Source of the DNA: Entomortierella parvispora E1425 | Taxonomy: Eukaryota; Fungi; Mortierellomycota | DNA length: 64,000 nt | NCBI GenBank assembly: GCA_020891255.1 | Contig: BQFW01000002.1 | Location: forward strand, 372,001 to 436,000 | Direction of reading: 5' to 3' | Translations under genes and position numbers: made by a program | Notes under the pieces: generated by a model | Databases searched by the model: none | What the model saw: the letters and a program-made list of their open reading frames with translations, nothing else | Told to the model about the DNA's origin: nothing | In this document: positions 40,613-64,000 of the stretch, in pieces | Numbering within the stretch: position 1 is the first letter of the stretch | Layout of the letters: the number at the start of each line of letters is the position of its first letter

Positions 40613-41614
40613 ATGAATCCCCATCGTGCTCGCAAGCCTGTCGACGAGTTTGACGACTCTCCTATCAAGTATCCATCGCAACTCCCCAAGAACAGCGATG
40701 GAAAGAATCCAAATGTGATGATTGTTGGAGCTGGCCTGGCTGGTCTACTGCTTGCCATCCTTTTGGACAAGGCTGGGATCCCATATGAGATCTATGAGCG
40801 AGCTGCGAGCGTCAAGCCGCTTGGTAGGATGGAAAGAAGACAAGGATTATTCTTTAAGAATTAGTCCCATTCTCTTGCAAGAATGCAATGCTGATTGAAC
40901 TCATTTATCTGCTGCTCTATCGTAGGGTCTATTATGGTCCTGAATGCCAATATCTTGGCGGCTATAGACCAAATCGGCCTCTTGGAGGAACTCGAGGCCA
41001 TTTCATTCCCCGGCAATAAGGCGAATATCATGTACGACAACCTGGCAATCGCTGCCTCGTTTGACAGCCTGAACAAGGATAATGAGTAAGAAGCTTGCTA
41101 CCATGGCGATCGTATTGTTTCTTTCTTTACTTTGCACGACAACTGATCCTAGAGTATAAAACGCACGGTAGGGTGGGATACGAGCACTTGCACTTCTCTC
41201 GCCCAAAGTTTCATGAATTGCTCCTGTCCAAGGTCCCAAAAGAAAAGATCCATTACAACAAGAAGGTCATGTCCATGATTCAGAACAAGGAAGGAGTCAT
41301 GATCCGTTGTGCTGACGGTACCACCTACCATGGCGATATCTTGGTGGGTGCCGATGGTGCTCACAGTGGCGTGAGACAGGGGTTGTACAGGACCCTACAA
41401 GAAAAGAACATACTCCCACAATCGGATGCAACAGAAATGAGCAAAGGATTCCTGGCAATGGTCGGTACCACGGACCCAATGGACCCTGAACAATATCCAT
41501 TTTTGAAGAACAACACCTCAACCTTCAATCAGGTCATTGGACGTGGCACAAGTTTCAACGTGAGTTATTCTCTTCAACTTCCTACTCTTCAACTTCAAGG
41601 ATTGTCTTTCTGAC

Positions 41615-41645
<31 letters not shown>

Positions 41646-42667
41646 GGTTTTACAGTGGTCCGAGTTCAACATGCCAGAGAATCGTGTGTGTTGGGTGATA
41701 GTCTCTCAAGTGGCATCGATTGCAGAGTTTGAACAGATCAAGTTCCGCAACTCAGAATGGGGACCTGAATCCAATCCCGAGTTCATTGACCAGGTCAAGG
41801 ATTTCAAAGTTCCTGGATGTGGTACACTTGGCAACTTGATCAACGCCACTCCTGAGGCCAACATCTCGAGGGTCTTTTTGGAAGAGAAGCTGTTTGAGAC
41901 CTGGTCGCATGGTCGGACAGTCCTCATTGGAGATGGTAAGGTGCTTTCGTATTGGGTGTTGACCAATGCCTCCGAAGTTCTAACTAACATTCATCTCCTG
42001 TTCTCCACTGATAGCTGCCCACAAGTTGCTCCCAAGTGCTGGGCAGGGTGCTGTGTGCGCACTGCAAGGTAAAAAATACATGGGTCACCTCTAATATCCA
42101 GTTCTCAATGTCAAACGTCCCATGTTTATTCACATTTATTACCTTATTAGATGCTGTTGTCTTGGCAAATTGTCTGTACGATCTGGAATCCCTTGATAGA
42201 GATGCAATCCACGCAGCATTCTTGGACTATAAAGAGCAGCGCTTCAACCATGTCGCTGAGATGTACGGGAAGAGCAAGATGAACGCCATCGTCCTCTACG
42301 GCCAGGTATGGTGATCTCATGAAAGATAAATGGATAAATGAAGTTATAGATTAATAATACTGACCGATGATCGGTTTTTTTTCCCGCTGTTTAGACCTTG
42401 AAAGAGCGGATCATTCGCCATATCATCTTGAACTGGATCCCTGAGTCTGTCAAGATCAAAGAACTTCATAAGGGCGCCGCTTACAGACCCATGGTGACCT
42501 TCCTGCCGCCCATCCCCAAAAAGGGCAAGATAGAGCTTTTGCCTCAGAAGCCATCCGTACGGTATGAGAGAGAACAAAAGAAAAAAGCCGAGGAGGAGGC
42601 TCTCAAAAGTCAGGCCGTGGCGGAAGACGTGCCCTATCCAATTGTATCCCCTGCAGAGGCTGTTTAG
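40613..42667 (+). CDS. Group A FAD-dependent monooxygenase, copy A (about 506 aa, 7 exons)
   Basis: Exons 40613-40823, 40926-41085, 41172-41559, 41656-41935, 42015-42068, 42151-42305 and 42395-42667 total 1521 nt with no internal stop. All three FAD fingerprints present: GAGLAG, DILVGADGAHSGVR and VLIGDAAHK..P..GQG...DAVVLA. Confidence 0.92.
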
Positions 42668-43441
42668 ATTGTTCATTGCTTACTTGCGTTTCCATAATTG
42701 AAGGTGAAAAAATACATACCCAGTTGAAAATTTTTTTTGAGCCTTGAGAGGCTCTTGTCCACTTTGCGCACTTTGCTCTTGGGCATGCTTCAATCTGCAC
42801 AATCTGCTCTTTTGTGCAACCAGATACAGAACTTTTCCGCGCGGAGCCGCTGCGGCAGATTTGGTGAACTCCCTCTTGTTGGTTGGACAACAGTTTTCAT
42901 TGACCTTCCTACTGTTGGAGGCACAGGAGGTCAGGGCAGATAAAATCTCTGATGAAGGCGTCTATTCAACAACACATTGTACCTAGCGGATAAGCGGCCT
43001 TTGCTGAAGCTTCTCATGACGGGGCAGCCTATAGAACGAAGACTGGCGTAAAAGCCCACAAGAAATCGACTTCGAATGTGCTCATTTTATTCTTATTGCT
43101 GATAAGAGTGAATTCTCAAAGGTCAGCGCGTCCGCGTCGCGTCTTGCTTGATAGACATGTTGAGATGATCCAGGCGTGTGCAAATGTCAGTGCAGAGAGG
43201 TGCACCGTTGCACCATGAGTACAACCGACCAACTCTTCTGTGCAGCAGGGTGTCACCAAGGATGCAAAATACCTGTATCGTCGGTGTTTGAAGTTGACCA
43301 TGCACGAAGAGCATGCCGCACAATGCGACCGCTAGACCGTTCTTTTTTGGCTCTCAAGAAAAAAAGAAAAAAAAAAAAAAAGGCATCTCATTCGGCCATC
43401 ATCTCTTTTTTTACAGACATTCACCATCTCGTTAATTCATC

Positions 43442-45549
43442 ATGGACCCCCATCATTCCCAGAACCCTGTCAACGGGTCGGATGACTCTACTATCAAGAA
43501 CCCATTCCAGCATCCCAAGAACGGCGATAGCAAGACCCCCCGGGTGATGATCGTGGGTGCCGGCCTTGCTGGTTTGCTGTTTGCCATCATTCTCGACAAG
43601 GCTGGGATCTCTTACGAGATCTATGAGAGAGCCTCAAGCGTTAAGCCACTTGGTATGAGAGAGAGAGAAGAGCGAAACGCCACGATGGATCTTTGGTGTT
43701 TCCTTCTTGCAATGGGAATCATGAGGCCTAAACAAGTTCACTTTCTTGGGTCCGATGCTAGGGTCTATCATGTCTTTGAATCCCAGTATCCTTGCGGCCA
43801 TCGAACAGATCGGCCTCTTGGATGAGCTCAAGGCCATCTCGTTCCCCGCTGGCGAAGCCAACATCATGTATGACAACATGGATATCATTGCCACGTTCAA
43901 CAGTAACACCATGCATGCAGAGTAAGTTTACCTTTTATTTTTTTATTGGCAAGCAGCAATATTCGAGGTTTTGTCTGACAAAAGACCATAAACTAATGCT
44001 CTATCGCGGTGAACACATAGTGAAGGATATGAACCTCAGAATTTCTCTCGTCCAAAGTTCTATCAACTCCTTCTGTCCAAGGTTCCAAAGGAAAAGATTC
44101 ACTACAACAAAAAGGTCACATCCATGATTGAGACCAACGAGGGAGTATCGATCACCTGCGCCGACGGTACCACCTACCATGGCGATATTTTGGTGGGCGC
44201 TGATGGCGCTCACAGTGGTGTTAGACAGGGGCTGTACAAGACCTTGCAGGAGAAGAACCTGCTTCCCACCTCGGATGCTGAAGAGCTAAGCAAAGGATTC
44301 TTCGCAATGGTTGGCACCACTGATCCAATGGACCCTGAGCAATACCCATTTTTGAAAAACCCTGCCTCAGCCTTCAGTCAGATCATTGGACGTGGCACGA
44401 GCTTCAATGTGAGTTCTTGATTTGTGCACTTTGCGCCATACACTTGAAGAACAAGAAGCACCCACTCTTTTTTTTTTTTTTTTTTTTTTTTTTTGCGCGT
44501 TGATCTATCAAGTGGGCCGAGTTCAACACGCCAGAAAACCGTGTTTGCTGGATTGTCATCTCCCAGATTGCGTCTGTTCCAGAGTCAGAAAAGATCAAGT
44601 ACCGCAACTCGGAGTGGGGTCCAGAATCCAACCCCGAGTTCATTGACCAGGTCAAAGACTTCAAAGTCCCGGGAGCTGGTACACTGGGTAACCTGATCAA
44701 CGCCACCCCTGCAGCCAACATCTCCAGGGTCTTTTTGGAAGAGAAGCTCTTCGAGACTTGGTCGCATGGAAGAACAATCCTCATTGGTGATGGTAAAGTA
44801 CATTTTTTTTCTCAAGGATTCTAATGGCTAATACAAGTATACCAACCATTGAGCTAACGTTCACTTCCACTGACAGCTGCTCACAAGCTACTCCCGAGTG
44901 CTGGACAGGGTGCTGTGTGCGCTCTACAAGGTAAAAATACATGGGCCACCTCCAATATCCAATTCTCAATGTCAAACATCCCATGTTTATTTACGGTGGT
45001 TGCCTTTAGATGCTGTCGTCCTGGCGAACAGCCTGTATGACCTGGAATCCCTTGACAGAGATGCGATTCACGCAGCCGGTCTGGATTATAAAGCACAGCG
45101 CTACAACTACGTTTTGGAGATGTACGGGAAGAGCAGAATGAATGCTACCATTCTCTATGGCCAGGTAAGAAGAAATTAAGTGAAAAGTAGTTCATTTGGT
45201 GAACTTTTTCTTTGGTTTGGTCTAGAAATGTAATCTCCAACGCTGATCAGAAACTCACAACTCATTTTTTTTTCTTTAGACTTTGAAGGAGAGGCTCATT
45301 CGACATGTTGTGCTGAACTGGATTCCCCAATCAATTAAGCTGAAGGAGATTCGTAGGGGTTCTGCCTATAGACCAATTGTCACCTTCCTTCCCCCTCCTC
45401 CCCAACGAGGCACAATTGTCCTTCTCCCTCAAAAGCAATCCGTGCGGTATGAGAAAGAGCAAAAGAAAAAGCAGGAAGAAGAGGCTCTCAAGGGCCAAAT
45501 TTCGGCAAAGGACGTGTCCTCCACTGCATCCCCTGCGGTGGTTCTTTAG
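43442..45549 (+). CDS. Group A FAD-dependent monooxygenase, copy B (7 exons)
   Basis: Same exon structure and motifs as copy A; exon 4 appears to use a weak AAG acceptor at 44512; reading frame intact. Confidence 0.9.
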
Positions 45550-46248
45550 ATTGCAGAATTGCTATATAAAATTTCAGAGCCTTGTGCCAGCATTGCTTAC
45601 GGATTGATATGAGAAATCTGCACTTTGTGCTACCAACATGTTCATTCATCAGCAGGTGAAAACACCACCTTTGGTTGCTTTGCTGGAACTCGTGCACCAA
45701 GTCATGTTCTCGTTCGTCTTTAGGAGAGCACACGAGTTGCAGAAATCTGGCCCAGTGCCAGCTAGCTATGTGCGAGCGACTTTTGCTGAAGAAAACAGTG
45801 GCACGCACCTGATAATGGGAGGACATGGGAGGATAGGTACAGGAGATCTCTTTCCAATGCAACCTCTTGTGTTCAAGGTCAACGCGATCGCTTCGCGTGT
45901 TTTCTTGTTCGAGTTGTTGTTGAGACGATCCAGTTGAAGAAAATCTCAGTTCCTCGGCGGTGGTTTAGTATATCGTACGGGCAACAAGACTGTTGGCTTG
46001 GAGAGCCAACTCTCCTATGCCGCAGGGTGCAGCACATCTGCAGCGTCGGTGTTTGAAGCTGATTCGATTCGATCGAGCATGTGGGCGTGGGGACAAAAAA
46101 AAATCATGTCTGCTCTGCCGTGCAGTTCGACCGTTGAACCATTCTCTTTTTGCTCTCAGGAGGGGAGAGGGACATCTCATCTCATTCGGTTCATCTCTTT
46201 TCTCTTCATCCTCTACATCCTCTTCATCCTCCGTCTCATCAGCTCGAC

Positions 46249-48283
46249 ATGAACCCGCATCGTGCTCGTAAACCTGTTGACGAGTTTGACGATTCTCCTA
46301 TCAAGTACCCGTCCCAGCTTCCCAGGACCAGCGATGGCAAGACTCCGCACGTGATGATTGTTGGTGCCGGCCTAGCTGGCCTCCTTCTTGCAATCCTTCT
46401 CGACAAGGCGGGGATTACGTATGAGATCTATGAACGAGCTTCGAGTGTCAAGCCACTAGGTATGAGAGAGGCGTTGAGAGGGAGAGAGGAACGGATTTCT
46501 TTCATCCGTCTCTTGCACTGAAGAGCCTATGGTTTAACGAGCTTCTTTTCTTGGGTCCAACGCTAGGTTCTATCATGTCTCTGAACGCCAATATCCAGGC
46601 GGCTATAGACCAGATTGGCCTTTTGGAAGAGCTCAAGGCTATCTCGTTCCCAGCGGGCGAGGCCAACATCATGTACGACAATATGGATATCATTGCCTCG
46701 TTCAACAGTTCTGCGATGCATGCAGAGTAAGTCTTAATTTTTTTTTGTCCTCAGCCCAGTAGCAAGATATGGGGATTCTGTTTGACAAAAGATTACAGAC
46801 TGATGTTTTGATCTGGTATGCAACACAGTGAAGGATATGAACCTTTGAACTTCTCTCGTCCAAAGTTCTATGAATTACTCCTGTCCAAGGTCTCAAACGA
46901 AAAGATTCACTACAGCAAAAAGGTCATGTCCATGATGCAAAACAAGGAAGGAGTCATGATCCGCTGCGCTGACGGAACCACCTACCATGGCGATATCTTG
47001 GTGGGTGCCGATGGTGCTCACAGTGGCGTGAGACAGGGGTTGTACAAGACCTTGCAAAAGCAAAACTTGCTGCCACCTTCGGACGCGACAGAACTGACCA
47101 AAGGATTCTTGGCAATGGTCGGTACTACGGATCCCCTGGATCCCGAACAATATCCATTTGTGAAGAAGCAGGCCTCGGCCTTCAGTCAAGTCATTGGTCG
47201 TGGCACGAGTTTCAACGTAAGAGAATCTCTTTCTCACTTTACTCGAAGCCCACACGCTTGAAATGCTTACTCTTGCTTTTTTTTGGATTCACTTAGTGGG
47301 CCGAGTTCAACATGCCAGAGAACCGTGTCTGCTGGGTGGTCATCTCCCAGATTGCGTCAGTTCCAGAGTTTGAAAAGATCAAGTTCCGCAACTCGGAGTG
47401 GGGACCTGAATCCAATCCCGAGTTCATTGACCAGGTCAAGGATTTCAAAGTCCCAGGAGGCGGTACACTTGGGAACTTGATCAAGGCTACACCCGAGGCC
47501 AACATTTCTAGGGTCCTACTTGAAGAAAAGTTATTTGAAACTTGGTCGCATGGAAGGACGGTCCTCATTGGAGATGGTAAGGTGCCTTTTTTTTTTTTTT
47601 ACCGATGCCCATCATCTTCAAGCAAACTAACGCTCCATTTTCATTGACTGTGTATAGCTGCCCACAAGCTACTCCCGAGTGCTGGACAGGGTGCTGTGTG
47701 CGCTCTACAAGGTAAAAACACATGGGCCACCTTCAACTTCCAATTCTCAATGGCAAACGTTCCGTGTTTATTCACACTGGTTGCCTTATTAGATGCCGTT
47801 ATCTTCGCAAACTGCCTGTACGATCTTGAATCGCTTGACAGGGATGCGATTCACGCAGCCGGTCTGGATTATAAAGAACAACGCTATCACCATGTGGCAG
47901 AGATGTACGGGAAGAGCAAGATGAATGCAACCATTCTCTATGGTCAGGTACGAAGGAGTTAAGAGAAAGAAAGGTCCTTTGGAAACGTTGTCTCCAGATA
48001 CCAACTTAAAAGTGGAACCCTCTCCTTTTTTTAGACCTTGAAAGAGAGGATCATCCGACACATGGTGCTGAACTGGATTCCTGAGTCTGTCAAGGTGAAG
48101 GGAATCCTCAAGGGCTCTGCCTACAGACCGATAGCCACCTTTTTGCCCCCTCCTCTCAAAAGAGGCACAATTGATCTTCTCCCTCAAAAACCGTGCGTGC
48201 GATACGAGAGAGAGCAAAAGACAAAGCAAGCAGAAGAGGCCCTCCAGAACCAGTCCGCACCAGATGACGCGTCTCTACTGTGA
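46249..48283 (+). CDS. Group A FAD-dependent monooxygenase, copy C (7 exons)
   Basis: ATG 46249 MNPHRARKPVDEFDD; same motifs and exon structure as copy A; slightly shorter C-terminus (..PDDASLL*). Confidence 0.9.
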
Positions 48284-48600
48284 GATCGCCCCCTGAAAAG
48301 GTTGTTTAGGTGGTCTTCTGAAGTGCCTTTCCCCCCTCAGATGGCCAAGTGGCTGAAGGTTGAAAAAAAAAAATAATAATAAATGTGGGAATTAGTGGCG
48401 CTACAATTCCTGATGCCGAACTTAGTACATCGTTGTGCACAACGAGCCACACACGATTTATTTTCACAAAGTAAGCGGTGCGTCTGAAACGTTTGGAGTT
48501 TCTAGATTCGTACAAACTGCAAGGGTAAACGTCTCTGCGCGGCCAGCGGACACTGCAGTTGTCCAACAGCGTTGTCCGATAGGAGGGCAAGAAAAGCCAC

Positions 48601-50667
48601 TTAAATGGTCACCACAGGTGATGCAGCGACAGAAGACATGCTCTCTGCCCCGGCATTGTTTTTGAGGGCTTCCTCCCTCTTCTTCTTTTGTTCCCTTTCA
48701 TACCGCGGAGATGGCTTTTGAGGTAGAAGATCAATTGTACCTCTTTTGGGGATAGGTGGCAGGAAGGTCACCATGGGTCTGTAGGCAGCGCTCTTGAACA
48801 GCTCTTTGAGCTTGATGGACTCGGGAACCCAGTTTAGGACCACATGTCGAATGACTCGCTCCATGAATGTCTAACCAAGCAGAATGAGAAGCCACACTTG
48901 TCAGTCAGCCAATTTCGACAGGCACAGTCGTTTTTTTTTATCTGTGAAGGATCTCCAATTAGCCTCTCTTCTTGGCATCTTCATACCTGACCGTAGAAAA
49001 CAGTCGCAGTGACCTTACTGGTCCCGATCATGTCCACAACATGGCGATAGCGTTGCTCTTTGAAATCAAGGAAGGTGGCGTGGATCGTGTCTCTGTCAAG
49101 AGATTTTAGATCGTACAGGCAATTCGCCAACACCACAGAATCTTGTAAGGCGCAAATTGCTCCTTGTCCGGAGCTTGGGAGAAGTTTGTGTGCAGCTAAG
49201 GCCAGAAAATTGGAAAAGAGCGATCAAAGACGTTAGTTCAATGTACTCATTTCGCGGTCCTCGAGACAACCATTCTTTTTCAGGGGAAAACAAAGCTATA
49301 CCATCGCCAATAAGGACAGTCCGCCCATGGGACCAGGTCTCATAGAGCTTCTCCTCAAGTAAGACCCTCGAGATACCGTCTTCAGGAGTAGCCTTGATCA
49401 AGTTACCAAGTGTACCAGCTCCTGGAACTTTGAAGTCCTTGACCTGGTTAATGAACTCTTGATTGGACTCTGGGCCCCATTCCGAGTTACGGAACTTGAT
49501 TTTTTCAAACTCTTCAATCGATGCAATCTGGGAGATAACTACCCAACATGAACGGTTCTCTGGAATGTTCAGTTCGCCCCACTGTGGAAAGATACACAAA
49601 AAATGAGAAATAGAGCAAAAAAAAAAAAAAAAAAAAAAAAAACGAGTGATGGCCTCCTCGCGTCCTTCAAAGTGTGGCGTGGGGACTGATTGAGGTCAAA
49701 AAACTCACATTAAAACTTGTGCCACGCCCAATGACCTGGCTGAGGTTTGAGACCTGGCTCTTCACAAATGGGTACTCTTCAGGATCCAATGGGTCTGTCG
49801 TGCCAACCATCGCAAAAAATCCGTTGCATTGTTCTTCTGCATCTGAGGCTGGAAGCAAATTTTGCTGCTTCAGGGTCTGATACAACCCCTGCCTCACTCC
49901 ACTATGTGCACCATCGGCACCCACCAAGATGTCGCCATGGTAGGTAGTGCCGTCAGCACAACGGATCATGACTCCTTCCCTGTTCTGAATCATGGACATG
50001 ACCTTCTTGTTGTAATGGATCTTTTCAGCGGGGACCTTGGACAGGAGCAATTGATGGAACTTTGGGCGAGAAAAGTTCAAGAAATCATAACCTATTCTAT
50101 ATGCACATGTCCGTACCGCAACTGGTTGTCAATGTCGATGCCATTCCGGTAAAACAAAAACGAAGGCCACACACACAATGACATGTTCAAAAGGAGACTC
50201 ACTTGCTGCTCGTGTTAGTGTTGTCGAACGTAGCAATGATCTTCATGTCTTCATACATGAGATTTGGGCTTCCGGCAGGGAACGAAATGGCCTCAAGTTC
50301 ATCCAGGAGACCCATCTGGTCTATGGCCCCAAGGATGTTGGCGGAGAGCGACATGATAGAACCTGACACCGAACGGAGGGAAACGAGCGGTTTTAGGTAC
50401 CTTGTTTAACAAATGAACAAGGATCGTTCAAAGTCTATTCTTTCTTCTTGTCTTACCAAGAGGCTTGACACCGGAGTCCCGCTCAAAGATCTCATACGGG
50501 ATCCCGGCCTTGTCGAGAAGGATGGCAAGAAACAAGCCAGCGAGGCCGGCACCCGCGATCATTACTCGTGGAGTCTTGTCATCGCCATTTTGAGGGAGCT
50601 GGGACGGGTACTTGATAGGAGAGTCGTCAAACTCATCGACAGGTTTGTTGGCTCGATGGGGGTTCAT
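48601..50667 (-). CDS. Group A FAD-dependent monooxygenase, copy D (6 exons; lacks intron 5)
   Basis: ATG 50667 MNPHRANKPVDEF; all motifs present; GQGAICALQ-DSVVLAN is contiguous across 49142/49141 with no intron. Confidence 0.9.
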
Positions 50668-51526
50668 GGCGAATGCACAATGGGAATGTTGGGGATGATG
50701 AGAAAAAAAAGATGATGATGGTGGCGATGAGATGTCGAGATGTCTGGACACGAAAACATAATTTCTGTCCTCCGAGGGCAAGAAAAAAATATGCATGGTC
50801 TCGGTCAATGTTGCACAGCATGGCTTCAAGCTCCTACTTTTAGCCTGAAAACCCGCATTCATCAGATGTCGGGAGTCCCAACCACGAGTATATTCAGTGT
50901 AGCAGACTATGACCAAGAGTAAGGCCAGCAAGTATATCGTACCCATGGTATATATCCGAATCTGGTACCTTCAGTGGCATGTTGTTACGAGAATGAAGAC
51001 GCGACGCGAACGCGCTGACTGACATCACGTGCGGAAGAATGTTGTGCATCCAGCCTGATGTTTGTGCAACCGAAACACTTTGGCCATGCCTCCTTCTCAT
51101 CACTTTCTATGTCCCAGAAGAAATAGTTCTTATTCATCTGAAATGGTATGCTCTCGCGATCAGCCTCCGGCAACTTCAACCTGTCGACTAACTGATTGTA
51201 TAAATCCATGCGTTTTGTGTATGGTTGCTGGCCAACGTCGACAGGCAATTGTGTTCAACCTCCCTCACATCTTTGATCTGCGAGCAGTCATCTGTGCATG
51301 AGTTCAGGAAGCTCAATACATCAATTCAATCGTATTTATGGCTCATAGATCGTAAAGATGTCCGTTCCTCACTGCGCTCGCAGCCTCCCTATCTATCTTT
51401 CTGAATTTCTGCATTGATTGCCCACCAATTGTACGTTTTTCTCTTATTCAACTCATGACAACTGGGAGGAATGATGAGGGACTTGAACAGATACTGTAGG
51501 GGATATAGTAGAAGAGGGCACTTCCT

Positions 51527-53575
51527 CTAAACAGACACCACAGGTGTCGCAATGGCAGATGATACGCTCTCCGTCATGATCTGGTTCTTCAAAACCTCCT
51601 CTTCCCGTTTCTTCTTTTGCTCTCTCTCGTATCGCCTAGATGGTTTTTGAGGGAGAAGATCAATTGTGCCTCTTTTGGGGATGGGGGGCAAAAATGCGAC
51701 CATCGGTCGGTAAGCAGCACCCTTGCGGATCTCCTTGAGCTTAAAAGACTCGGGAACCCAGTTCAGGATCACATGTCGAACGACACGCTCCGTCAATGTC
51801 TAATCAATAGGTACAAAAGGACAATGTGTCTAGTCAGTTCACCAGAAGGACGCCTTACGAATCTAAAACTACAAACTCCATCCAGACACTCCTCTAAGCC
51901 GCCATACCTGACCGTGGAGAATGGTCGCAAGAAGGTTGCTCTTCTCGTACATTACAGCGAGATGAGGGTAACGTTGCTCCTTATAATCTAGGCACGCTGC
52001 GTGGATCGCGTCCCTGTCAAGAGATTCCAAATCGTACAGGCAGTTTGCCAAGATAACGGCATCTAATAAGGCAACCTGTGTGAATAAACATGGAACATTT
52101 GACATTGTGAATTGGAGGTTGAAGGTGGCCCATGTGTCTTTACCTTGTAGAGCGCACACAGCACCCTGTCCAGCACTCGGGAGTAGCTTGTGGGCAGCTA
52201 TTGACAGTCAATGAAAATGGAGCGTTAGCTTGCTTGAAGATGGCGGGCATCAGTCTCAAAAAAAGGCACTATACCGTCTCCAATGAGGACTGTCCTTCCA
52301 TGCGACCAAGTCTCGAAGAGCTTCTCTTCCAAAAAGACCCTGGAGATGTTGGCTTCAGGGGTGGCATTGATCAGGTTACCCAGAGTACCGCCTCCTGGGA
52401 CCTTGAAATCCTTGACCTGGTCAATGAACTCGGAATTGGATTCTGGTCCCCATTCCGAGTTGCGGAACTTTATCTTTTCAAACTCTTCAGCAGACCCAAT
52501 TTGAGAGATGATGACCCAACAGATCCGGTTCTCTGGCATGTTGAACTCTGACCACTGATTTGGATCCAAAGTTACAAATGGAGAGAATCGTAAGTTCTTT
52601 ACATTCGTTGAAGGTATAAAAAATGGAGGCTTTAGATACACCTACACTGAAGCTTGTGCCGCGTCCAATGACCTGGCTGAAGTTTGAGGTTTTGTTCTTC
52701 AAGAATGGATATTGTTCGGGGTCCAAAGGGTCCGTGGTACCGACCAGCGCCAAAAAACCTTTGCTCAGTTCAGTTGCATCTGATGCTGGCAGCAAGCTCT
52801 GTTCCTGCAGGGCCTTATATAACCCCTGCCTCACTGCACTGTGTGCGCCATCGGCCCCCACCAGGATGTCGCCATGATAGGTGGTGCCGTCAGCACAACG
52901 GATCATTACTCCTTCCTTATTTTGCATCATGGACATCACCTTCTTGTTGTAATGGATCTTTTCCACCGGGACCTTGGATAGAAGCAATTGGTGGAACTCT
53001 GGACGCGGAAAATTAAGATAATCATATCCAACTCTGCAATGCACATGTTCCGCAATGGGCAATTAGTTGTTGAGAAAGTTAAGCACCCTGCACGTAACGT
53101 TGGCTTCAAAGATCTTACTCGCTGTTTGTGCTATTGTTGTTGAATGTGGCAATAACTTTCATGTTTTCATACATGATGTTAGAGTCCCCGGCTGGCAGTG
53201 AAATAGCCTTGAGCTCATCCAAGAGACCAATCTGCTCAATAGCCCCAAGGATTTTGGCATTCAACGATAAAATGGACCCTAACATCAACCCAAAGGAAAG
53301 GAGTTAAGAACAGCGTTTGTAAATAGTCCATAGACTCAGAAGGCAACACTTTTTCTCATGATACCAAGTGGTCTGACAGTCGAGGATCTTTCATAGATCT
53401 CGTATGGGATCCCGGCCTTGTCGAGAAGGATGGCAAGCAGTAGGCCAGCCAGACCGGCACCAACAATCATCACATTTGGATTCTTTCCATCACTCCTAGG
53501 GGGAAGCTGAGATGGGTACTTTGTAGGAGTGTCGTCAAACTCGTTGGCAGGTTCGTGGGAATGATGGGGATTCAT
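51527..53575 (-). CDS. Group A FAD-dependent monooxygenase, copy E (7 exons)
   Basis: ATG 53575 MNPHHSHEPANEF; all motifs present; canonical splice sites; reading frame intact. Confidence 0.9.
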
Positions 53576-54624
53576 TTTGAATGGAGCGGAATGAGCGAAA
53601 TGGGAGAATAAGGAATGAAAGGCCGGCCTGCATTTTTTTTTTCTTTTTCTCAATGCCTTTGGGTGAACACAAAGAGAGCAAAAAAGTAAAATAACTGTTG
53701 GTCGCACGGCACAGCAGCAAAGCATCATTTGCAGGAAACCTATTGATGCCTGCAGCACTGGAAACCCCATATTCAATGTTCACTGATACTTGGGAAAGGT
53801 AGTCAACCAAGACGTCAAGTACCTCGCATTCAGAAGAGTAGAGGATTGAGTTATGATAGGAGAAAGACGCGACAGAAACGCGCTGACCTTGATAGACAAG
53901 AAGGCGAGGTTTGTGATGGTCGAAGGCGCTCTCATTGCTCCGCAGAGCACAAAGCTCAATTGCTGGTCACCAATAAAATTGGCCCTCAGCTACACCTGTC
54001 CCGTTCAATCATTTCACCCATGTCTCTACTGCATCCTCTTCATGAGTTGACATATTTAACGCCAATTCCTCCCGATAGACAGAGCCATCTCATGAGAGCT
54101 TCAGATCGAGTTGCCTTACGACCATAAGATCGTGTGGAATCCAATATTCTTCTCGCCTTTTGGTAGTCGCAAGACTGCGGTATCTTGACAGATCATGGTT
54201 GCTCGTTGTGGACGAAAGATTGTGCAAAACAGAGCAAGTCGGGGAACATCTTGTTATACCGACAGCACGTAGAAAAGGCCCTCCGACAGATGTTCATCGG
54301 ATGGACGGCAGCGTAGTGGACTAACTCAATCACGTCGTTGCATTTGTGGCCCCTGATGCTATTCTTGCTGGTGCTCCATTTAACCCGAAGGATTGAGCTA
54401 ATGGCATTTTTTTTCCATCTCCCAGTTCTCAAAAGATATGAGGTGTGCCGCTGAGCGCTCCATGGTCTGGTTCTAGAGACCTCAAAGATGGTGGTTATCT
54501 ACAAGCTATCGCCCTTCCCATGTCAGCTGAAGTCAAAAGACAGCAATTGAAATTTAGTATTACCATCCATTTATTTATTTTTCTTCCAGCAGCCAGAGGG
54601 AAGAGAGGACCCACAGCCGATCAT

Positions 54625-56665
54625 CTAGACAGTCACCACTGGCGGTTCAATGAGGGAGGATACGTCCTCCGCCGTCGCCTGACTCTTGAGTGCCTCCTCT
54701 TCCTTTTTCTTCAGTTGCTCTCTCTCGTACCGCACTGAGGGCTTTTGAGGGAGAAGATCTATTGTGCCTCTTTTGGGGATGGGGGGCAAAAAGGTGACCA
54801 TAGGCCGGTAGGCAAACCCTCTGTGAAGTTCCTTGAGTTTGATAGACTCGGGGATCCAGTTCAGAACTACATGTCGAATGATCCTCTCCTTCAGGGTCTA
54901 GACAGAGAGAAATTGTAGATATTTTTTTCCAGTGAGTATGAGTCCAGAATCCACGTTCCATAAAAAATCCCGCCAAATTCACGCAGGTCTTTTCATACCT
55001 GACCGTAGAGGATAATTGCATTCATCCTGCTCTTCCCATACATCTCCGCAACGTGATGGTATCGTTGCTCCTTAAAGTCTAGACACGCTGCGTGGATCGC
55101 ATCTCTATCGAGAGATTCTAGGTCATACAAGCAGTTCGCCAAGATAACAGCATCTAATAAGGCAACCAGTGTGAATAAACATGGGACGTTTGACATTGAG
55201 AACTGGAAATTAGATTTCTGTGTATTTTTACCTTGCAGTGCGCAGACAGCACCCTGTCCAGCACTCGGGAGTAGCTTGTGGGCAGCTATTGACAGTCAGT
55301 GAAAATGGAGCGTTAGCTTGCTTGAAGATGGTGGGCATTAGTCTCAAAAAAAGGCACTATACCGTCTCCAATGAGGACTGTCCTTCCATGCGACCAAGTC
55401 TCGAAGAGCTTTTCTTCCAAAAAGACCCTGGAGATGTTGGTCGCTGGGGTGGCATTGATCAAGTTGCCAAGAGTACCGCCTCCTGGCACTTTGAAATCCT
55501 TGACCTGGTCAATGAACTCGGAATTGGATTCAGGGCCCCATTCAGAGTTACGGAACTTGATCTTTTCAAATTCTGCAATCGACGCAATCTGAGAGACTAC
55601 CACCCAGCACACGCGATTCTCGGGCATGTTGAACTCGGCCCACTGAGTTAACCCGTAATAGAAGAGGGATCGGAATTGGTGAGAATTGCATGTCCTTCAA
55701 TGGCGCAGAATAAAGCCATGAAACAGGCGAGGCAAAACTCACATTAAAGCTTGTGCCGCGTCCAATAACCTGACTAAAGTTTGAAGCTTGACTTTTCAGA
55801 AATGGGTATTGTTCGGGGTCCATTGGGTCAGTAGTTCCGACCATCGCTAGAAAACCTTTGCTCAACTCTGTGGCATCTGATGCTGGGAGTAAGTTTTGTT
55901 GTTCCAAGGTCTGGTATAGACCCTTTCTCACTCCACTGTGCGCGCCATCGGCGCCTACCAAAATATCACCGTGGTAGGTGGTACCGTCGGCACAACGAAT
56001 CATGACCCCTTCCTTGTTCTGGATCATGGACATCACCTTCTTGTTGTAGTGAATCTTTTCCGCTGGGATCTTGGACAAGAGCAGTTGGTGGAACTTTGGA
56101 CGAGAGAAATTAAAAAAATCGTACCCCTGTCTATGTGCAACAGGCGATTAGTTTAAGGCCATCTATCAAACATCAAAAAACATGCAGTTCACCCAAATAT
56201 TACTTACTCTCCGTTCTTGTTTGGGTTCTCAAAAGTGGCAATGATCTCCAGGTTTTCATACATGATGCTTGATTTGTCTCCAGGAAACGAGATGGCCTTG
56301 AGCTCGTCCAGGAGGCCAATTTGCTCGATGGCCCCAAGGATGTTGGCGTTTAAGGACATGATTGACCCTAAATGTCGAACCAAAAGGTGAGCGTTGAGGA
56401 CCATGTTGAAATGTACTGTTCAGTAAAAAAAGTTGACCTCCACTCTTATCATACCAAGAGGCTTCACGCTTGAGGCTCGCTCGTAGATGTCATACTGGAT
56501 TCCGGCCTTGTCAAGAAGGATGGCAAGCAGAAAACCGGCAAGTCCTGCTCCAACGATCATCACCTGTGGGGTCTTGCCATCGCTGTTCCTAGGAAGCTGG
56601 GAAGGGTACTTGATAGGTGTGTCGTCAAACTCGTCGACTGGCTTTCGCACACGATGAGGGTTCAT
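54625..56665 (-). CDS. Group A FAD-dependent monooxygenase, copy F (7 exons)
   Basis: ATG 56665 MNPHRVRKPVDEF; last exon TLKERIIRHVVLNWIPES..PPVVTV* ends at TAG 54627-54625 and is not shown as an ORF in the track. Confidence 0.9.
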
Positions 56666-57572
56666 GATGAATGGGTAATGAGAATGTTGGGGATGAGGAG
56701 AAAAAGAGATGATGGACCGATGAGATGGTCCATTCAGATATCTGGTCACAACACAGAGAATCAACAAAAATGAATGGTCTGATGGTCGCACAGCAGCAAA
56801 CGATCACTCTGGGTCTGATCCTTCTCAGCGGCACCCGTGCTGCGCTCCAGACAAGCAATGGCCCCAGCAAGCAAGTGCGTCGCATCAAGGTGATGTTGAA
56901 GGGCTGACGATTGAGATTATCAATGAGTACATAGGACGCAATTCGAACGAGCTGACGGATAGACTTAATCCTCTTTGTTAGTCTATAGTTCATGGACACG
57001 AACAGCATCCAGATGAACATTCTTCTTCGTGCAATTGGGTGCATCTCCTGCTCCACTCCTTTGTTTGGACCATCCTTCATTCACAAGGTGGCCTCTCGCT
57101 TGGTTTCAACCTGCCTCGCGATGTGTAGCTGGCCGATGGAAATATGAACCTTGGGAATCTTCAATCCCTACCAGTTTGCCACGGCTCTTGCCGTCGTTGA
57201 TGTTGTTCTTGTTGTCGCTCCTGCCACTACTCCCAGAGGACGGGGAAGGGATCTTTAACCTTTGCGGCATCCATAACTCCCAGACATCAACAATCCACTG
57301 CTGTTTTAGCATGAAGAATCATTGCCGATGGATAATAGCTCTTCCGTTTCTTTGAATTTGGTAGAGCACTTGTTCATCAGAGCAGCACTCGTGCATGCAG
57401 CCGTGCACGCAACCTGCTTGATCAAACGCTTCCAAGCTGTGTTGTGCGACCATCCATTTTTCTTTCTTTTTTTTCGCTCTTTGTGTTCAGCAGACGTGGA
57501 AAGGCGTCTGTTTGCCTCTTGGTTCCTCATCTTTTTTCTCCTCATCTCCAGCATTCTCATTGCCCATTCGCC

Positions 57573-59596
57573 ATGAACCCTCATCGTGTTCGGAAACCCG
57601 TCGACGAGTTTGACGACGCTTCTCTCAAGTACCCTTCCCAGCTTCCACCCAAAAGCGATGGCAGGACCCCACATGTAATGATCGTTGGAGCCGGTCTGGC
57701 TGGTCTCTTTCTTGCCATCCTTCTTGACAAGGCCGGGATCCCGTACGAGATCTATGAGCGAGCCCCGGCAGTCCGACCGCTAGGTATGATAAGAGAAAAT
57801 AATGGTTTTCTTTGAGCCTACAATCTTTTGCACGCCATGACCTTTTTTAACTGCGATGTTAGGATCAATCATGTCCCTCAATGCCAACATCCTGGCGTGC
57901 ATAGAACAAATCGGTCTCCTGGATGAGCTCAAGGACATCTCGTTCAGAGATAGCCAGGCAAACATCATGTACGACGACATGAAAGTAGTTGCTTCATTCC
58001 CAAGTCTGAACCTGAACAACGAGTAAGTTTATTCGCTGTCTGTGCAACTAAGTCTCCAAGCAATTAGGCTTCAGAAACTGAGTCCCATTTGTTCTTTAGC
58101 ATTGGGTATAACTTCCAATTGTTTTCACGTCCCAAACTCCATAACTTGCTCTTGTCAAAGGTCCCCGCCGAAAAGATCCACTACAACAAAAAGGTCTTGT
58201 CGACAATCCAGAACAAGGAAGGCGTCATGATTCGCTGTGCGGATGGCACCACCTATCATGGCGACATTCTGGTCGGGGCCGACGGCGCGTACAGCGGTGT
58301 TCGTCAAGGTTTATATAAGAACCTCCAGGATGAGAACAAGCTCCCTCCTATCGACGCAAAGGACCTTTCCAAGGGGTTTATTTGCATGGTGGGCACGACT
58401 TCTCCTTTGGACCCTGAGAAGTTTCCGATCGTCCAGAAAGATGATTGCGTTTTTACTCAGGTCATTGGCAAAGGCACCCGATACACGGTGAGCATTTTCA
58501 AATCACAAGCGGCTGCTCTACACAAGATCAACTAGAGAGTGCTTAACCTTACCTTATCTCATCTCATGTGCCAGTGGTCTGAATTCAACATCCCGGAGAA
58601 GCGAATCTGCTGGGTCGTTGTTTACCAGCTTGAGTCGCTCGAGGAATCAGAAACCTTGAGGTTCCGTAACTCGGAATGGGGACCGGAATCCAATCGCGAG
58701 CTGGTAGCCCAGGTTAAAGGGTTCAAGGTACCAGGAGGCGGAACACTAGGAAATTTGATAGACGCAACTCCAGCAGAGAACATCTCACGGGTCTTTTTGG
58801 AGGACAAGCTCTTTGAAACTTGGCACCATGGAAGGACAGTCCTTATTGGCGATGGTAATTCCCCGAGAAGTTATCGTATTCGACTTTCGGCTCTACATGT
58901 CAATATATGATGTTTAATCCTCCTGCTTGTGTTTGTCAAATAGCCTGTCACAAGCTACTCCCAAGTGCTGGACAAGGTGCGGTGTGCGCACTGCAAGGTA
59001 AATACATGGACCATCTCCAATCTCCAATTCTCAATGTCAAATGGCTCATGTTTATTCACACTGGTTGCCTTATTAGATGCTGTTATCTTGGCCAACTGCC
59101 TCTATGATCTGGAATCTCTCTCCCCACAGCACATCCATGAGGCGCTCCAGGATTACAAAGATCAGCGCTACAGTGCTGTCAAGGAGGTTTTCGAGCGGAG
59201 CAAGTTCAACGCCATTTTCCTCCATGGTCAGGTACGAGCAATTGATCCAAGAGAAGAAATATAAGCATGATAGCCAACATGGCATCGCTGTTGTCCTGAA
59301 ATTAACGAGCGATCACTTTGTACCCATAGACTTTGTCGGAGCGCTTCATCCGATATGTAGCCATGAACTTGGTCCCGCAGTCAGTCAAAATGAAGAACCT
59401 TCGCAAGGGTTCTGCTTACCGACCACAGGCCAATTTTTTGCCATTGGCTCCGAAGCGAGGAACATGTGAGGTGCTGCCTCAAAAACCATCAAAGAGATAC
59501 GAGAGAGAACAAAAACAAAAACAAGAGGAGGCGCTCAAGGGACAGGCTTCTGAAGGGACCTCAATTGCGGGAGTATTGGCTGCTTCTGCTGTTTAG
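57573..59596 (+). CDS. Group A FAD-dependent monooxygenase, copy G (7 exons; most divergent copy)
   Basis: ATG 57573; motifs GAGLAG, DGAYSGVRQ and IGDACHKLLPSAGQG; differs from A-F in helices such as LESLSPQHIHEALQ and RPQANFLPLAPKRG. Confidence 0.9.
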
Positions 59597-60719
59597 GTTA
59601 CCGCTCTCTCAAAAGTTTTCTTTCGAATGAAGTTGTGTTTTTGAAATCGCGCTGGATCGAGCATCCTTCCGTGATCACACTCTACAATGCACTGTTCGTT
59701 TTCAAGACAATGATCGGGACTAAAAGGATGATGTTTTGTTTGTTGGATGTTCATGAAGGCATGCAGTATGATATTTTTTTTCGTTTCGTTTATTTCTTCC
59801 TGGAAGTCCTTTTTCAGGAGAGCTTGATGGGCGCCGTCAGCCATGTATTCATACTATTGTACCTATCGTTTGCGGTCTTGATGGCGACGATATTGCCGTT
59901 GGCGAGAACAAATAGACCGTCCGTTGCCGGGTCTAGTCTCAAGTGGCCGGTGGCGCGCTGACTGGACAAGCTCTCCTATATGGTCGATTGGGACTTTTTG
60001 AACAAATCTGCGCCCTCATGGTTTCGTCCAACTTTTCGTTATCGTGCTTGTTCGAAAAGTGCGCTACCGTGGCGTGGTCATGTACTAAGCCCATGCTGCC
60101 GATGCAATTGGTCCAATGTGTGGCTGAAATGCCGATGGCATCTGCCGAGAAGTGCCATCGTTTGATAATGGACCTGTTGAGCCAACGTAAAGGCGAATTC
60201 TCCCTGGTCCTTTAGTAGATCCTCTGTCGGACGTATAACGCAGGTTTTTTTATCATCTGTGGCATTGATGAAATCAATGCAGTAGCCGTTTTGGATGGGA
60301 AGAGCTGGTTTCCTCGCGATGTGTAGGGGAAGGAACTGACAGATGTCGTGGTCTGTGAGAGTGCCAAGTGCAAGAGAGTGAGAAGAAAGTGCAGGATTGA
60401 GAGCGAGAGAGCCGGAGGACGGCAAGATATGATGGTAGATGTGGTATTTGTTTCGCGTCGAAACAAATGCGAAATGGCATGGACTGCTTTCACCACGTGA
60501 TAAATGTGCACCAATGTTCATGTACATGTACTCCTTGACCATCCCCCCACCATTCTACCACCAACACTTGAATGCCAATCCTCCAATCCCCTCTGTCGAA
60601 TCATCCCATGCCATGTTGCCTTCACCCCTTTTTGCAAGGCATTCATAACCCTGTCAATGTGCTGCGTGTGTGAGCAACACGAGGTGAAGACAAAACAAAG
60701 CAATGATGAAAATAGAGCG

Positions 60720-62007
60720 TTTTTGAAAGAGGAACTCATATTGCGGCCTCCATTATAGCTCATACTGACACGCCCACATTGCCTTTGTCCTATCAACAAA
60801 ATAGCAGGCGACGGATTCATTGAAGAGGCATTCTCCGGCGACTAAAGTGTAGAAAGGACTCAGAAGCTCGCCACTGATTATGATGTCACCAACAAAAGCA
60901 ATCAGCGATTATCAGCTGCTCAACCTGTGAACGAAGGACTCATGGATATTGGCACAAGCGAGTGGGGACGATGACTTCACATTGTGGACTATTTTGGCGT
61001 CAAAGTGTTATGGTGCTGTAGGACGAGACATTGGACGAGACAATGGCACCGGCAGATATCGAGTCTGGGAAGGGAGGAACAAGACGTCGGGAATCCGTTC
61101 AGGAGACTGATCCTGCATCTCGGAATGAGGAATCCAGGATCCAAAATGCTCCCCGCCCTCTTTGCCCTCGAGGAGCATTCGGTGCAGGAGCATCTTCTAG
61201 GTGGCTTGAACGAATCTGATGGATCTGTCGCGCCCACATCGACAAATTCAGCAGGAGACGAAGGGGCCTTCATCGCGCGAAGCAGGTATCGGTATCCAGT
61301 AGTTCGCCAATACGAACAAGAGCCTGACGGAAGGAGCTGTAGCGATCGCCAAAATTCTTGGAATTAATGTTTCCGTGGCCTACCGTGAGGCCGCAATGTA
61401 CCGTGAAAGGAACCAACAGACATCTTACCTAGTGATCTCAGCGTCATCCCACAGCGAGGTCTTGAGTATCTTCTCGATCGCGTCAAAGCCTCCACCAGTC
61501 TCAGTCTACTACCCTGTCGAGTTTTCCTTCACGATTTCCGACGCGACAATTCCTTCTGTACGGAAGAACTTGCGGTGTACTATAGTCACGAGCGCCCAGA
61601 GCAGCCGACGAACAATGCCTGGGCTTGTGTGGGGGAGCAACCCAGATCGGCGGCTGCATCGATCGTATGCATCTACAAGTGCTCACATTGGAATAAGCCA
61701 CGGTACTGTATCGAAGGTTGTTCTTGGCCGGAGCAATAACGGGATGCTCGGTCAGTACTTCAGAGATCTTATTCTGGATTACTTGCCAGAAGACACGCCT
61801 CTGCAAATCCGCGACGCTGCCGGGCTCGATAACAGAGGCGCTGTGACATGTTTGAGAGTCCAAAGATCCGGATTGTTTTTGTTGAACAACATTGACGCTG
61901 CCGGGCTCGATAACAGAGGCGCTGTGACATGTTTGAGAGTCCAAAGATCCGGATTGTTTTTGTTGAACAACATTATAGTTAGCTGCGATGCTATGGATCA
62001 TCTATAG
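60720..62007 (+). pseudogene. Degenerate coding-like remnant, possibly an F-box/LRR-type gene
   Basis: Frame-broken peptides EELIL / ASIIAHTDTPTL / CLCPINK (F-box-like) and HLQVLTLE, FRDLILDYLP (LRR-like), interrupted by stops. Pattern recognition only. Confidence 0.3.
61813..61974 (+). repeat. Perfect tandem direct duplication, 2 x 81 bp
   Basis: gacgctgccgggctcg...gttgaacaacatt occurs at 61813-61893 and again at 61894-61974 with no mismatch seen. Confidence 0.95.
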
Positions 62008-62068
62008 CCAATATCGCTGTATTCTCCTTGCTTCGCTCTATGCAATAAATGCTTGGTAATCGCTTGGA

Positions 62069-62599
62069 GATGCGGTCATCTTGGCCAATTGCCTCAAAGA
62101 TCTAGAGTCCCTCTCGTAACATCATTTCGAAGCTGCTCTGAACGACTACAAGAACAGCGCTATGAGGTCGTCAAGCAGAGTTATAAAAAGAGCCATCGAT
62201 CTCTATGGCCAGGTAATCAGGGACATCAGACTCTCTTGTTGCTGTCACTGGCCACATTTTTTTTTTTCACCCACGCACTCTCTCTTCACATGTGTCTCTC
62301 TATCTCTCTCCTTTCTTGCTTGATCCCGGCCTCTTGTCGAGTGTTGTATTCGCCACATGGTCTTCAATTGGGTACCTCATTCTGTTCAGACAAAGTCGTT
62401 TTTGAAAAAACTCGGCATACCGGCCTCAGATCAACTCTTTGCCGCTGGCCCCCAAACGAGGCAATTTGGATGTGCTCCCTCAAAGGCCCTACGAAACGCT
62501 ACGAGTGAGAACTGCAGAAGAAGCGGAAACGCGATGAACAGAACTCTTGCCCAGGAAGCGACGTCAACGCGAACAACCCCTGCGGCGACCGTCGTCTAG
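62069..62599 (+). pseudogene. Decayed 3' remnant (exons 6-7) of an eighth FAD monooxygenase paralog
   Basis: DAVILANCLKDLESLS is followed by an in-frame TAA at 62117-62119. A frameshift follows (EQRYEVVKQSYKKS lies in another frame), then LYGQ|gtaatc, then HMVFNWVP and, frameshifted, AYRPQIN.LPLAPKRG.LDVLPQ. No Rossmann-encoding 5' exons were found upstream. Confidence 0.85.
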
Positions 62600-62721: not shown

Positions 62722-64000
62722 TCATTCCTCGTCTTCCTCATCCTCGTCCTCCTCCTCCTCCTCTTCTGGAGAGTCGACCTCAAAGTCATAAGTGGGGTCG
62801 ACATATTCCTCGTCCAGATGAGCACCTGGGAGATCTTCGTTGGAGACAGCCTTGTCGGTGATCTGAGCTGCTTCAGCCGCGGCAGCATCAGGAGCCGCCT
62901 GCTGTTGGTGAATGTCCTCGGCGTTGTCTTGGTGAATTTCTGGGACACTGATGGCTTCCACAACAGGCACAGCCTGTTCCAAGAAGCTACTGCCGCCCTC
63001 ATTGAGGGTGCTGCTCTGATCATTGTTGTTCTCAGCTGGAGCCACGGCAGCCTTGTTGGCGACATACTGCGCGTAGTCGGTTGGGTATTGGTTGCAGTCA
63101 TAGTCCCAGGTTTTCAAGACCTTGGATGCCTCACACTCAGATCTCGTCCACTCGGAGCCATAGGTAAGAGGTGCGTAGCTTCGGAAAACATAGATCGCTG
63201 TGGACGCGACGAGGATCATGGCCAAGACTCGGAAGCGGTTTGGAAGGAACCTGCAGCCCAAATCGAACGTCACAGCAAGGAGAAGAATGGAAAAGTAAAG
63301 GGCGGGGAGATAGTGGTGCAAAAACAATTGACGGTCCATGAGGAAAAATGGAAGGTAGTGGTAACACCAGCCCATGAAGAAGAAACCTCCAGAGAGCTCA
63401 TAGTACTCCCTCAGTCCCTTGAAGTCGTCCTTGTAGCCACGCTTGTCCCGAATAAAGAGCAGACCACGAATGGCGGCATACAAAACGACGGAGAATGTCG
63501 AGAGATACCAGGTGAACCAGTTGCCAACCAAGTAGACGTGTTTTTGTTCCTTGCCCCAGAAACTGATTCCACGCTTCATAATAGGCCAAGAAGAAGGGCG
63601 CGAGTCATACGGATGAGAGTCCGTTAAGCCGGCGTTCGTCGTCCACATGACCTTGTTGAGTTCAATAAACTTGCCAAAGAATCCAGGCTTTTTGTAATTG
63701 ACAAGTGGTGCATCCGCAGGGTCTAGAATACCATTAAAAATTGATACATATTAGTAAAGAAACCTCCCCGACTGGCATTGGCATTGATAGAGCTGTGATA
63801 TCAAGCAACTTACAGCTGTCGTGATGGTTCGACTCGATCATCCATATAGTTTTTCCGACCACGGCGCTGCGCATGCAAGTGACTTCCTGTTGCTCAAAAC
63901 CCCACTTGGGGAGCTTGACTTTATGAGAGAAAAGGTCGCAGTTCATGTTGATGTGGACCAGCTTGAACTTGGATCGCAAGGTGTGCAGCGACGTGCTCGC
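62722..64000 (-). CDS. PMT1: Dolichyl-phosphate-mannose--protein O-mannosyltransferase, 3' part (runs off the window)
   Basis: End of MIR domain LFSHKVKLPKWGFEQQEVTC; intron 63813-63723; then PGFFGKFIELNKVMWTTNAGL, SRPSSWP, HYLPFFLMDRQLFLHHYLPALYF and an acidic tail. RQLFLHHYLP..YF favours the PMT1 subfamily. Confidence 0.85.

Follow-up and report, generated by a model that had tools for sequence, protein, structure and literature searches.

The 64,000-nucleotide window considered here (contig BQFW01000002.1 of Entomortierella parvispora E1425, positions 372,001 to 436,000; window positions are used throughout) contains a row of seven paralogous genes, A to G, whose products are predicted from their sequences and modelled fold to be group A flavoprotein monooxygenases of the PHBH fold. 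With a probability of about 60%, we read these as seven functional, stand-alone monooxygenase genes of an expanded family, the copies of which would widen the range of substrates open to the fungus in the catabolism or detoxification of soil aromatics. Every copy has an intact reading frame and carries the mark of purifying selection, several copies have exchanged short tracts of DNA, and at least four further arrays of the same family are present elsewhere in the genome.

Gene models, protein family and predicted fold

When the exon-sized open reading frames (ORFs) of gene A were used as tblastn queries against the whole window, seven complete and collinear sets of matches were found between 40.6 and 59.6 kb in the order + + + - - - +, with no further matches in the 64 kb except for a C-terminal remnant at 62060-62596. 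The splice sites of gene A were read from the sequence and then transferred to the other copies through a MAFFT DNA alignment. The resulting exon skeleton of 211/160/388/280/54/155/249-273 nt is common to the copies with the exception of gene D, which is made up of six exons because intron 5 is absent and exons 5 and 6 are fused at 48987-49195. All introns are GT-AG in all seven copies. The spliced frames are open throughout and encode proteins of 498-506 aa that are 65-84% identical in pairwise comparison, and G stands furthest apart, at 65-70% identity to A-F. Start-to-start distances range from 2,755 to 3,098 bp, and F and G lie head-to-head across a spacer of 907 bp. The seven models agree letter for letter with GenBank proteins EMPS_00993-00999, which are labelled either "hypothetical protein" or "FAD-binding domain-containing protein". 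The E1425 assembly from which these are drawn comprises 38.7 Mb in 19 contigs with 11,641 coding sequences, modelled by AUGUSTUS with RNA-seq hints (PMC8759367). An initial annotation made from the letters of the window alone had described seven intact paralogs in this arrangement at about 3-kb spacing, and tblastn, the open frames and the GenBank identity all confirm it; the single exon skeleton that it proposed for the whole set holds for six copies but not for gene D.

Database searches were performed with single exons first and then with the GenBank proteins identical to the models. Exon-by-exon searches of Pfam and the PDB gave weak superfamily matches. Pfam FAD_binding_3 (PF01494) is matched by all seven proteins at 77.7-97.5 bits against a cut-off of 22, and all three fingerprints of the class are present: the GxGxxG motif, for the ADP part of FAD, as GAGLAG at residue 39 in every protein, the DG motif, for FAD and NAD(P)H, at residue 185 as DGAHS (DGAYS in G), and the GD motif GDAAHKLLPSAGQG (GDA[AC]H), for the ribityl part of FAD, at residue 345, again in every protein. 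Across 117 relatives, these motif columns show little or no variation. Structure prediction from a single sequence reached a pLDDT of only 33, and an alignment of 117 sequences was used instead, which gave a model with a pLDDT of 89.3 and a pTM of 0.89. The model has a PHBH-like fold with a single FAD-binding Rossmann domain, a separate NAD(P)H domain being absent, and its residues 1-33 are disordered. In Foldseek, the 50 best matches listed from the PDB are without exception group A (PHBH-fold) flavoenzymes at 17-23% identity, headed by HpxO (E = 4e-31, TM 0.85 by target) and followed by TrlE, AbsH3, NicC, MNX1, SorC, 3-hydroxybenzoate 6-hydroxylase (3HB6H), TropB and the tetracycline destructases. 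A sequence search of solved structures placed NicC first (8e-26) and also returned HpxO, salicylate hydroxylase, TrlE and vanillate hydroxylase. The earlier assignment to the group A flavoprotein monooxygenases is thus borne out by Pfam, the three motifs and the fold matches. That assignment had further named a salicylate hydroxylase/zeaxanthin epoxidase/kynurenine monooxygenase clan; the salicylate hydroxylase fold is indeed recovered, while the other two names apply at superfamily level only. Housekeeping roles as Coq6, kynurenine monooxygenase or squalene epoxidase were rejected on grounds of copy number and scores below cut-offs.

At its C-terminus each protein has a conserved extension some 90 residues long (residues ~415-493), which is confidently modelled. 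It is made up of helices, a conserved extended stretch (AYRP...FLP...RG...LPQKPS) and a charged helix (471-493). Searched by itself against the Atlas, the C-terminal part gave structural matches with TM > 0.5 to Mucoromycota FAD-binding clusters only, and among the neighbours of the whole model there are uncharacterised clusters from Ascomycota as well, at TM 0.77-0.79. Judging from these matches, the extension occurs elsewhere mainly in Mucoromycota and in part among Ascomycota relatives. Inspection of the array proteins by eye revealed no signal peptide, transmembrane segment or PTS1.

Selection, gene conversion, introns and the relic

Across all 21 pairs of copies, dN/dS is 0.06-0.15 at a dS of 0.8-2.7 (values above 1 are saturated and hence approximate), and the copies are therefore both old and constrained. 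Amino-acid variation is concentrated at residues 91-135, 196-240 and 391-450 of the linear sequence, and the cofactor segments are 94-96% identical. The youngest pair is B and C with a dS of ~0.8, which indicates a pattern of birth and death without very recent births. Sliding-window comparison of the DNA revealed a mosaic in which several pairs share tracts with an identity of at least 92% in each 100 nt, including E-F (gene A positions 1112-1470), C-E (1345-1606), A-C, A-D and B-E. The stretches E 52133-52432 and F 55221-55520 are 94% identical over 300 nt against ~73% for the whole genes, and this tract takes in intron 4 at 96% identity. Because the tracts include intron DNA and join oppositely oriented copies, they are attributed to gene conversion, and the E-F tract is a clear and recent case.

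Intron 5 (78-82 nt) is conserved to an unusual degree, with a mean identity of 82% among the six copies that carry it, compared with 32-44% for the other five introns and with 56% for third codon positions overall (60-65% in the flanking exons). The similarity extends to G, despite a dS of ~2 between G and the other copies, and EMPS_06999 from another array likewise carries the conserved intron. More distant paralogues have an intron at the same position, but its sequence is unrelated. Short conversion tracts overlap intron 5 in some pairs, although the similarity of G is not obviously explained in this way. The intron gave no Rfam match at E <= 1 as a known RNA, and as a candidate structured RNA it has a consensus fold of only -2.5 kcal/mol and no covariation. 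It is precisely missing from D, EMPS_07000, EMPS_06864 and the Gryganskiella cystojenkinii sister gene 002975, and this patchy distribution on the tree implies several exact losses or transfers. As a separate observation, intron 3 contains homopolymers of 26-27 T on the gene strand in genes A (41615-41641), B (44468-44494) and D (49617-49642); they lie a little upstream of the 3' splice site as unusually long polypyrimidine tracts and are absent from the other copies.

Downstream of G lies a relic of an eighth copy, which had been recognised earlier as a pseudogenised gene. The relic is real and does contain a stop and frame shifts, but it is a 3' fragment only, equivalent to the last third of a copy. 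It matches exons 6 and 7 and perhaps also the GD-motif end of exons 4/5. In the part resembling exon 6 the reading frame is interrupted by an in-frame stop (62117-62119) and by internal frame shifts, and the part resembling exon 7 has a change of frame near 62406 and a small deletion. Exons 1-4 were sought by tblastn with the seven paralogues and ~300 relatives, and nothing significant was found upstream of ~61975. A weak minus-strand match at 61112-61324 (E = 0.03) was considered as a relic exon and dismissed as chance. No gene is called at the relic in the GenBank record. In the tblastn alignments its residues are closest to gene G, pointing to a tandem duplicate in the G lineage that has since decayed. 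The 5' edge of the relic, its point of truncation, is abutted exactly by a perfect 81-bp tandem duplication, and the position of this duplication at the break suggests a recent replication-slippage or repair event.

Other arrays, phylogeny and neighbouring genes

The family extends well beyond the window. A HMMER search with exon 3 returned 1,567 cluster representatives at E <= 1e-3, and all 20 of those looked up are from Mortierellaceae; a word search with the same exon, limited to fragment-length proteins, also pointed to Mortierellaceae. Full-length word searches returned 2,061 and 1,214 proteins at E <= 1e-10, and the best 120 of each are nearly all from named Mortierellaceae, with runs of adjacent locus tags in many species. 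In E. parvispora itself, at least 32 genes of the family were counted, distributed over five or more arrays, one pair and five singletons. The genes next to the arrays are unrelated from site to site (MFS, WD40, Pil1, ubiquitin). A similar row of at least five family genes, BGZ83_010453-010458, lies beside an alginate lyase gene in G. cystojenkinii, where the closest orthologues are on contigs of about 3 kb. These other arrays are like that in the window in family, head-to-tail arrangement and spacing of ~2-3 kb, and the window array differs from them in its chromosomal site and neighbours, its inverted three-gene block and its relic. The existence of at least five arrays with unrelated neighbours, together with similar arrays in other Mortierellaceae, argues for a gene-family bloom rather than a locus-specific system, and since the neighbours vary between arrays, no partner gene defines a "system". 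The locus had been put forward at first as the best candidate in the window for an undescribed system; this does not stand, as at least four other arrays of this family exist in the genome and the genes of the locus are already annotated in GenBank.

The closest members to the array are EMPS_06999, 01025, 01026 and 01028, which are 74-81% identical to A; the ten closest paralogues are 74-85% identical. A quick tree was made with 86 rows and a more careful one with 30 proteins in IQ-TREE. In the latter, genes A-F and these four members form a ten-gene clade restricted to E. parvispora (100/100), which is sister to G. cystojenkinii 002975 (99/97). Within the clade, A pairs with EMPS_06999 from another contig, E with EMPS_01028 from the second array, and B with C. 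Gene G branches outside the clade of A-F and G. cystojenkinii 002975, near EMPS_06864. A tree with A-F as a clade of their own is 61 log-likelihood units worse and is rejected (AU p = 0.0001), a value that must be read in light of the group having been picked after the first tree was seen and of the capacity of gene conversion to distort the tree. On these sequences, copies appear to have duplicated and spread between arrays once Gryganskiella had split off, and the G lineage appears to be older than this phase. The comparison with genome-wide and cross-species homologs that the initial annotation had called for thus places A-F among copies from two other arrays, and the birth-and-death character that it ascribed to the locus fits this interleaving as well as the dead fragment, the inverted three-gene block and the conversion tracts.

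Two side observations concern the wider family. The E. parvispora genes group with those of G. cystojenkinii (a 32-row clade, support 99), and the genes of E. chlamydospora, E. lignicola and E. beljakovae cluster with Mortierella sp. AD strains, apart from E. parvispora; either subfamily loss, gaps in low-coverage assemblies or a generic placement that needs a second look would account for this grouping. Some Mortierellaceae members are 700-1,200 aa in length, which could reflect a fusion of tandem copies or gene models that merge array neighbours.

The array is flanked by a DEF1-like gene and a protein O-mannosyltransferase gene, in agreement with the DEF1 and PMT1 named earlier as its neighbours. 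The former combines a CUE domain, which scores 34.1 bits (cut-off 21.1), with a Q-rich region, and the latter extends beyond the end of the window (PMT_4TMC E = 1.4e-62). The remaining Pfam families found in the window or close to it are prefoldin, eIF2-gamma, GCD14, Rpr2, DPBB/barwin, Kelch and HLH. As had been noted from the letters, there is no polyketide synthase (PKS), nonribosomal peptide synthetase (NRPS) or terpene synthase among the long ORFs of the window or the gene calls up to 10 kb from either end of the array, a scan of long ORFs and called genes in which short or heavily spliced genes further upstream were not exhaustively covered. Two ORFs, at 17522-20254 (+, 910 aa) and 30888-32492 (+, 534 aa), match no Pfam family at E <= 1e-3. 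The features are collected in Table 1.

Table 1. Features of the monooxygenase array and its surroundings, in window positions, with the family arrays of E. parvispora
Feature	Position	Strand	Details
DEF1-like upstream neighbour	36109..39414	+	812 aa; CUE domain, then Q-rich region
Gene A (EMPS_00993)	40613..42667	+	506 aa, 7 exons; Pfam FAD_binding_3 90.9 bits
Gene A exons	40613-40823, 40926-41085, 41172-41559, 41656-41935, 42015-42068, 42151-42305, 42395-42667	+	Read from the sequence
Gene B (EMPS_00994)	43442..45549	+	505 aa, 7 exons; Pfam FAD_binding_3 89.9 bits
Gene C (EMPS_00995)	46249..48283	+	498 aa, 7 exons; sister of B in the tree
Gene D (EMPS_00996)	48601..50667	-	505 aa, 6 exons
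Gene E (EMPS_00997)	51527..53575	-	506 aa, 7 exons; sister of EMPS_01028 from another array
Gene F (EMPS_00998)	54625..56665	-	506 aa, 7 exons
Gene G (EMPS_00999)	57573..59596	+	504 aa, 7 exons
Intron 5	A 42069-42150, B 44931-45009, C 47712-47792, G 58998-59076	+	From exon models
Intron 5	E 52063-52143, F 55154-55231	-	From exon models
Perfect tandem duplication	61813..61974		81 bp, 2.0 copies, 100% match (TRF)
Relic	61975..62540 (about)	+	G-like 3' fragment; tblastn with the seven proteins and relatives
Protein O-mannosyltransferase, downstream neighbour	62722..64000	-	885 aa; PMT + MIR + PMT_4TMC
Family array	In the window		7 genes, EMPS_00993-00999
Family array	Same contig, ~70 kb downstream		At least 6 genes, adjoining a WD40 gene
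Family array	Contig 9		At least 5 genes, adjoining an MFS transporter gene
Family array	Elsewhere on contig 9		3 genes
Family array	Contig 13		4 genes, adjoining Pil1
Locus tags of the other arrays			EMPS_01023-01028; 06998-07003; 09538-09540 and a neighbour

Probable function, alternatives and closest known systems

The array is probably the product of tandem and segmental duplication in a family that appears to be greatly expanded in Mortierellaceae, and it would since have been remodelled by one inversion of the D-E-F block, by short conversion tracts and by the loss of the copy now left as the relic, with purifying selection keeping all seven remaining copies. By analogy with the mechanism of the family, NAD(P)H would reduce the bound FAD, and the reduced FAD would react with O2 to form a C4a-hydroperoxyflavin. 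One oxygen atom would then be passed to an activated small molecule, most likely a phenolic or N-heteroaromatic compound. The copies may broaden the range of substrates in the manner of P450 or GST blooms, rather than act as steps of one pathway; a widening of range is suggested because the copies are kept by selection and their differences are concentrated in three segments. The detoxification or chemical defence that the initial annotation had proposed is likewise a putative role. Several points weigh against this reading. The nearest characterised enzymes (HpxO, NicC, salicylate hydroxylase and the tetracycline destructases) are ~20% identical to the array proteins, and none of the NCBIfam equivalog scores comes near its cut-off, as for the HpxO urate hydroxylase (NF033623; 144-150 bits against 500) and salicylate 1-monooxygenase (TIGR03219; 94-102 bits against 446), so that even "aromatic hydroxylase" is an extrapolation. 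Epoxidation, dearomatisation and decarboxylative hydroxylation are further reactions of group A enzymes, and AbsH3 carries out a reduction. In the library of papers searched, nothing relevant to this family in Mortierellaceae was found. The saturation of dS, the purely linear placement of the variable segments and the reservations on the tree, given above with the respective results, count on the same side.

A bolder version of this reading is possible, although we hold it to be a good deal less probable. The Mortierellaceae may maintain an undescribed "flavin monooxygenase defensome" with a C-terminal module of its own and tens of genes per genome in many arrays, which diversifies by duplication, dispersal between arrays and conversion and serves to neutralise bacterial or plant aromatics; the ~80-nt intron, kept at ~82% identity despite saturation at synonymous sites, could then be a functional element. 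Neutralising aromatic metabolites is a role usually taken by P450s. Alternatively, and this seems unlikely, the copies could be dedicated resistance enzymes that inactivate bacterial aromatic antibiotics, driven by soil bacteria or endobacteria. Tet(X), Tet(50-56) and rifampicin monooxygenase are indeed among the matches, and the host lives with Burkholderiaceae-related endobacteria (PMC8759367). However, catabolic hydroxylases are matched just as well, and the NCBIfam scores are 53-58 bits against cut-offs of 750-800.

Slightly more doubtful still are two further alternatives, which we regard as equally improbable. The genes could provide tailoring steps in a secondary-metabolite pathway whose synthase lies at a distance (a split cluster), or could act serially on one scaffold. 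The Mortierellaceae have NRPS products, and the structural matches TropB, SorC, AfoD and CtdE are fungal group A tailoring enzymes, yet no synthase, transporter or regulator is common to the five arrays examined, which recur beside unrelated housekeeping genes, and a set of at least 32 paralogues, the closest of them as similar as reported above, is unlike the distinct steps of a pathway. The genes could also epoxidise or hydroxylate lipids or polyenes in the manner of squalene epoxidase or zeaxanthin epoxidase, which would accord with the lipid-rich biology of Mortierellaceae. Precomputed SE flags are carried by some paralogues, Lycopene_cycl is matched below its cut-off, and Pfam SE (PF08491) is matched weakly in four of the proteins, at 22.1 bits in E and 18.7-19.4 bits in D, F and G; no SE match was found in A, B or C. 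These SE matches are partial and fall short of the full length of the family, lying mostly around the GD motif (residues ~341-424, and 267-403 in the case of D) with scores at the cut-off of 20.1 or lower, and the best matches in both sequence and fold are hydroxylases of small aromatics rather than squalene epoxidase. Furthermore, the array proteins have no transmembrane segment by eye, and their C-terminal helix is charged. That most copies are redundant and drifting towards loss, in an array without adaptive meaning, is very improbable: one copy is already a dead fragment, but seven of seven frames are open at a dS of at least 0.8 with the cofactor motifs intact, and the low dN/dS of every pair contradicts such decay.

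Mortierellaceae, which rank with the commonest fungi of soil, are known for their biotransformations, and a large, selectively maintained set of flavin hydroxylases would be a plausible basis for that chemistry as well as a possible source of new biocatalysts. The similar arrays elsewhere in the E. parvispora genome are to be counted as one phenomenon with that in the window and not as independent discoveries.

The closest known systems are single catabolic or detoxifying enzymes. HpxO, the FAD-dependent urate hydroxylase of Klebsiella (PDB 3rp6/3rp7/3rp8), and NicC, a 6-hydroxynicotinate 3-monooxygenase (PDB 5eow/8uiq), resemble the array proteins in their group A PHBH fold, which has a single FAD domain and lacks a separate NAD(P)H domain, and in the GxGxxG, DG and GD motifs. 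Their identity to the array proteins is only ~20%, and they lack both the disordered N-terminus of ~33 residues and the conserved C-terminal extension. Salicylate hydroxylase, 3-hydroxybenzoate 6-hydroxylase and the fungal decarboxylating MNX1 (PDB 5evy, 4bjy, 8x38, 8r2t) share the fold and motifs at 19-21% identity and are stand-alone catabolic enzymes for small phenolic acids. The tetracycline destructases Tet(X) and Tet(50-56) also have this fold and represent soil-derived families of paralogous, detoxifying group A monooxygenases, although they are 17-21% identical to the array proteins, which score far below the NCBIfam cut-off. Set beside these enzymes, the locus is an ordinary expansion within a well-known enzyme class and not a new system. 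What is worth recording is the pattern at the level of the family, in which tens of paralogues per genome lie in several arrays across Mortierellaceae and are annotated only as hypothetical or FAD-binding proteins.

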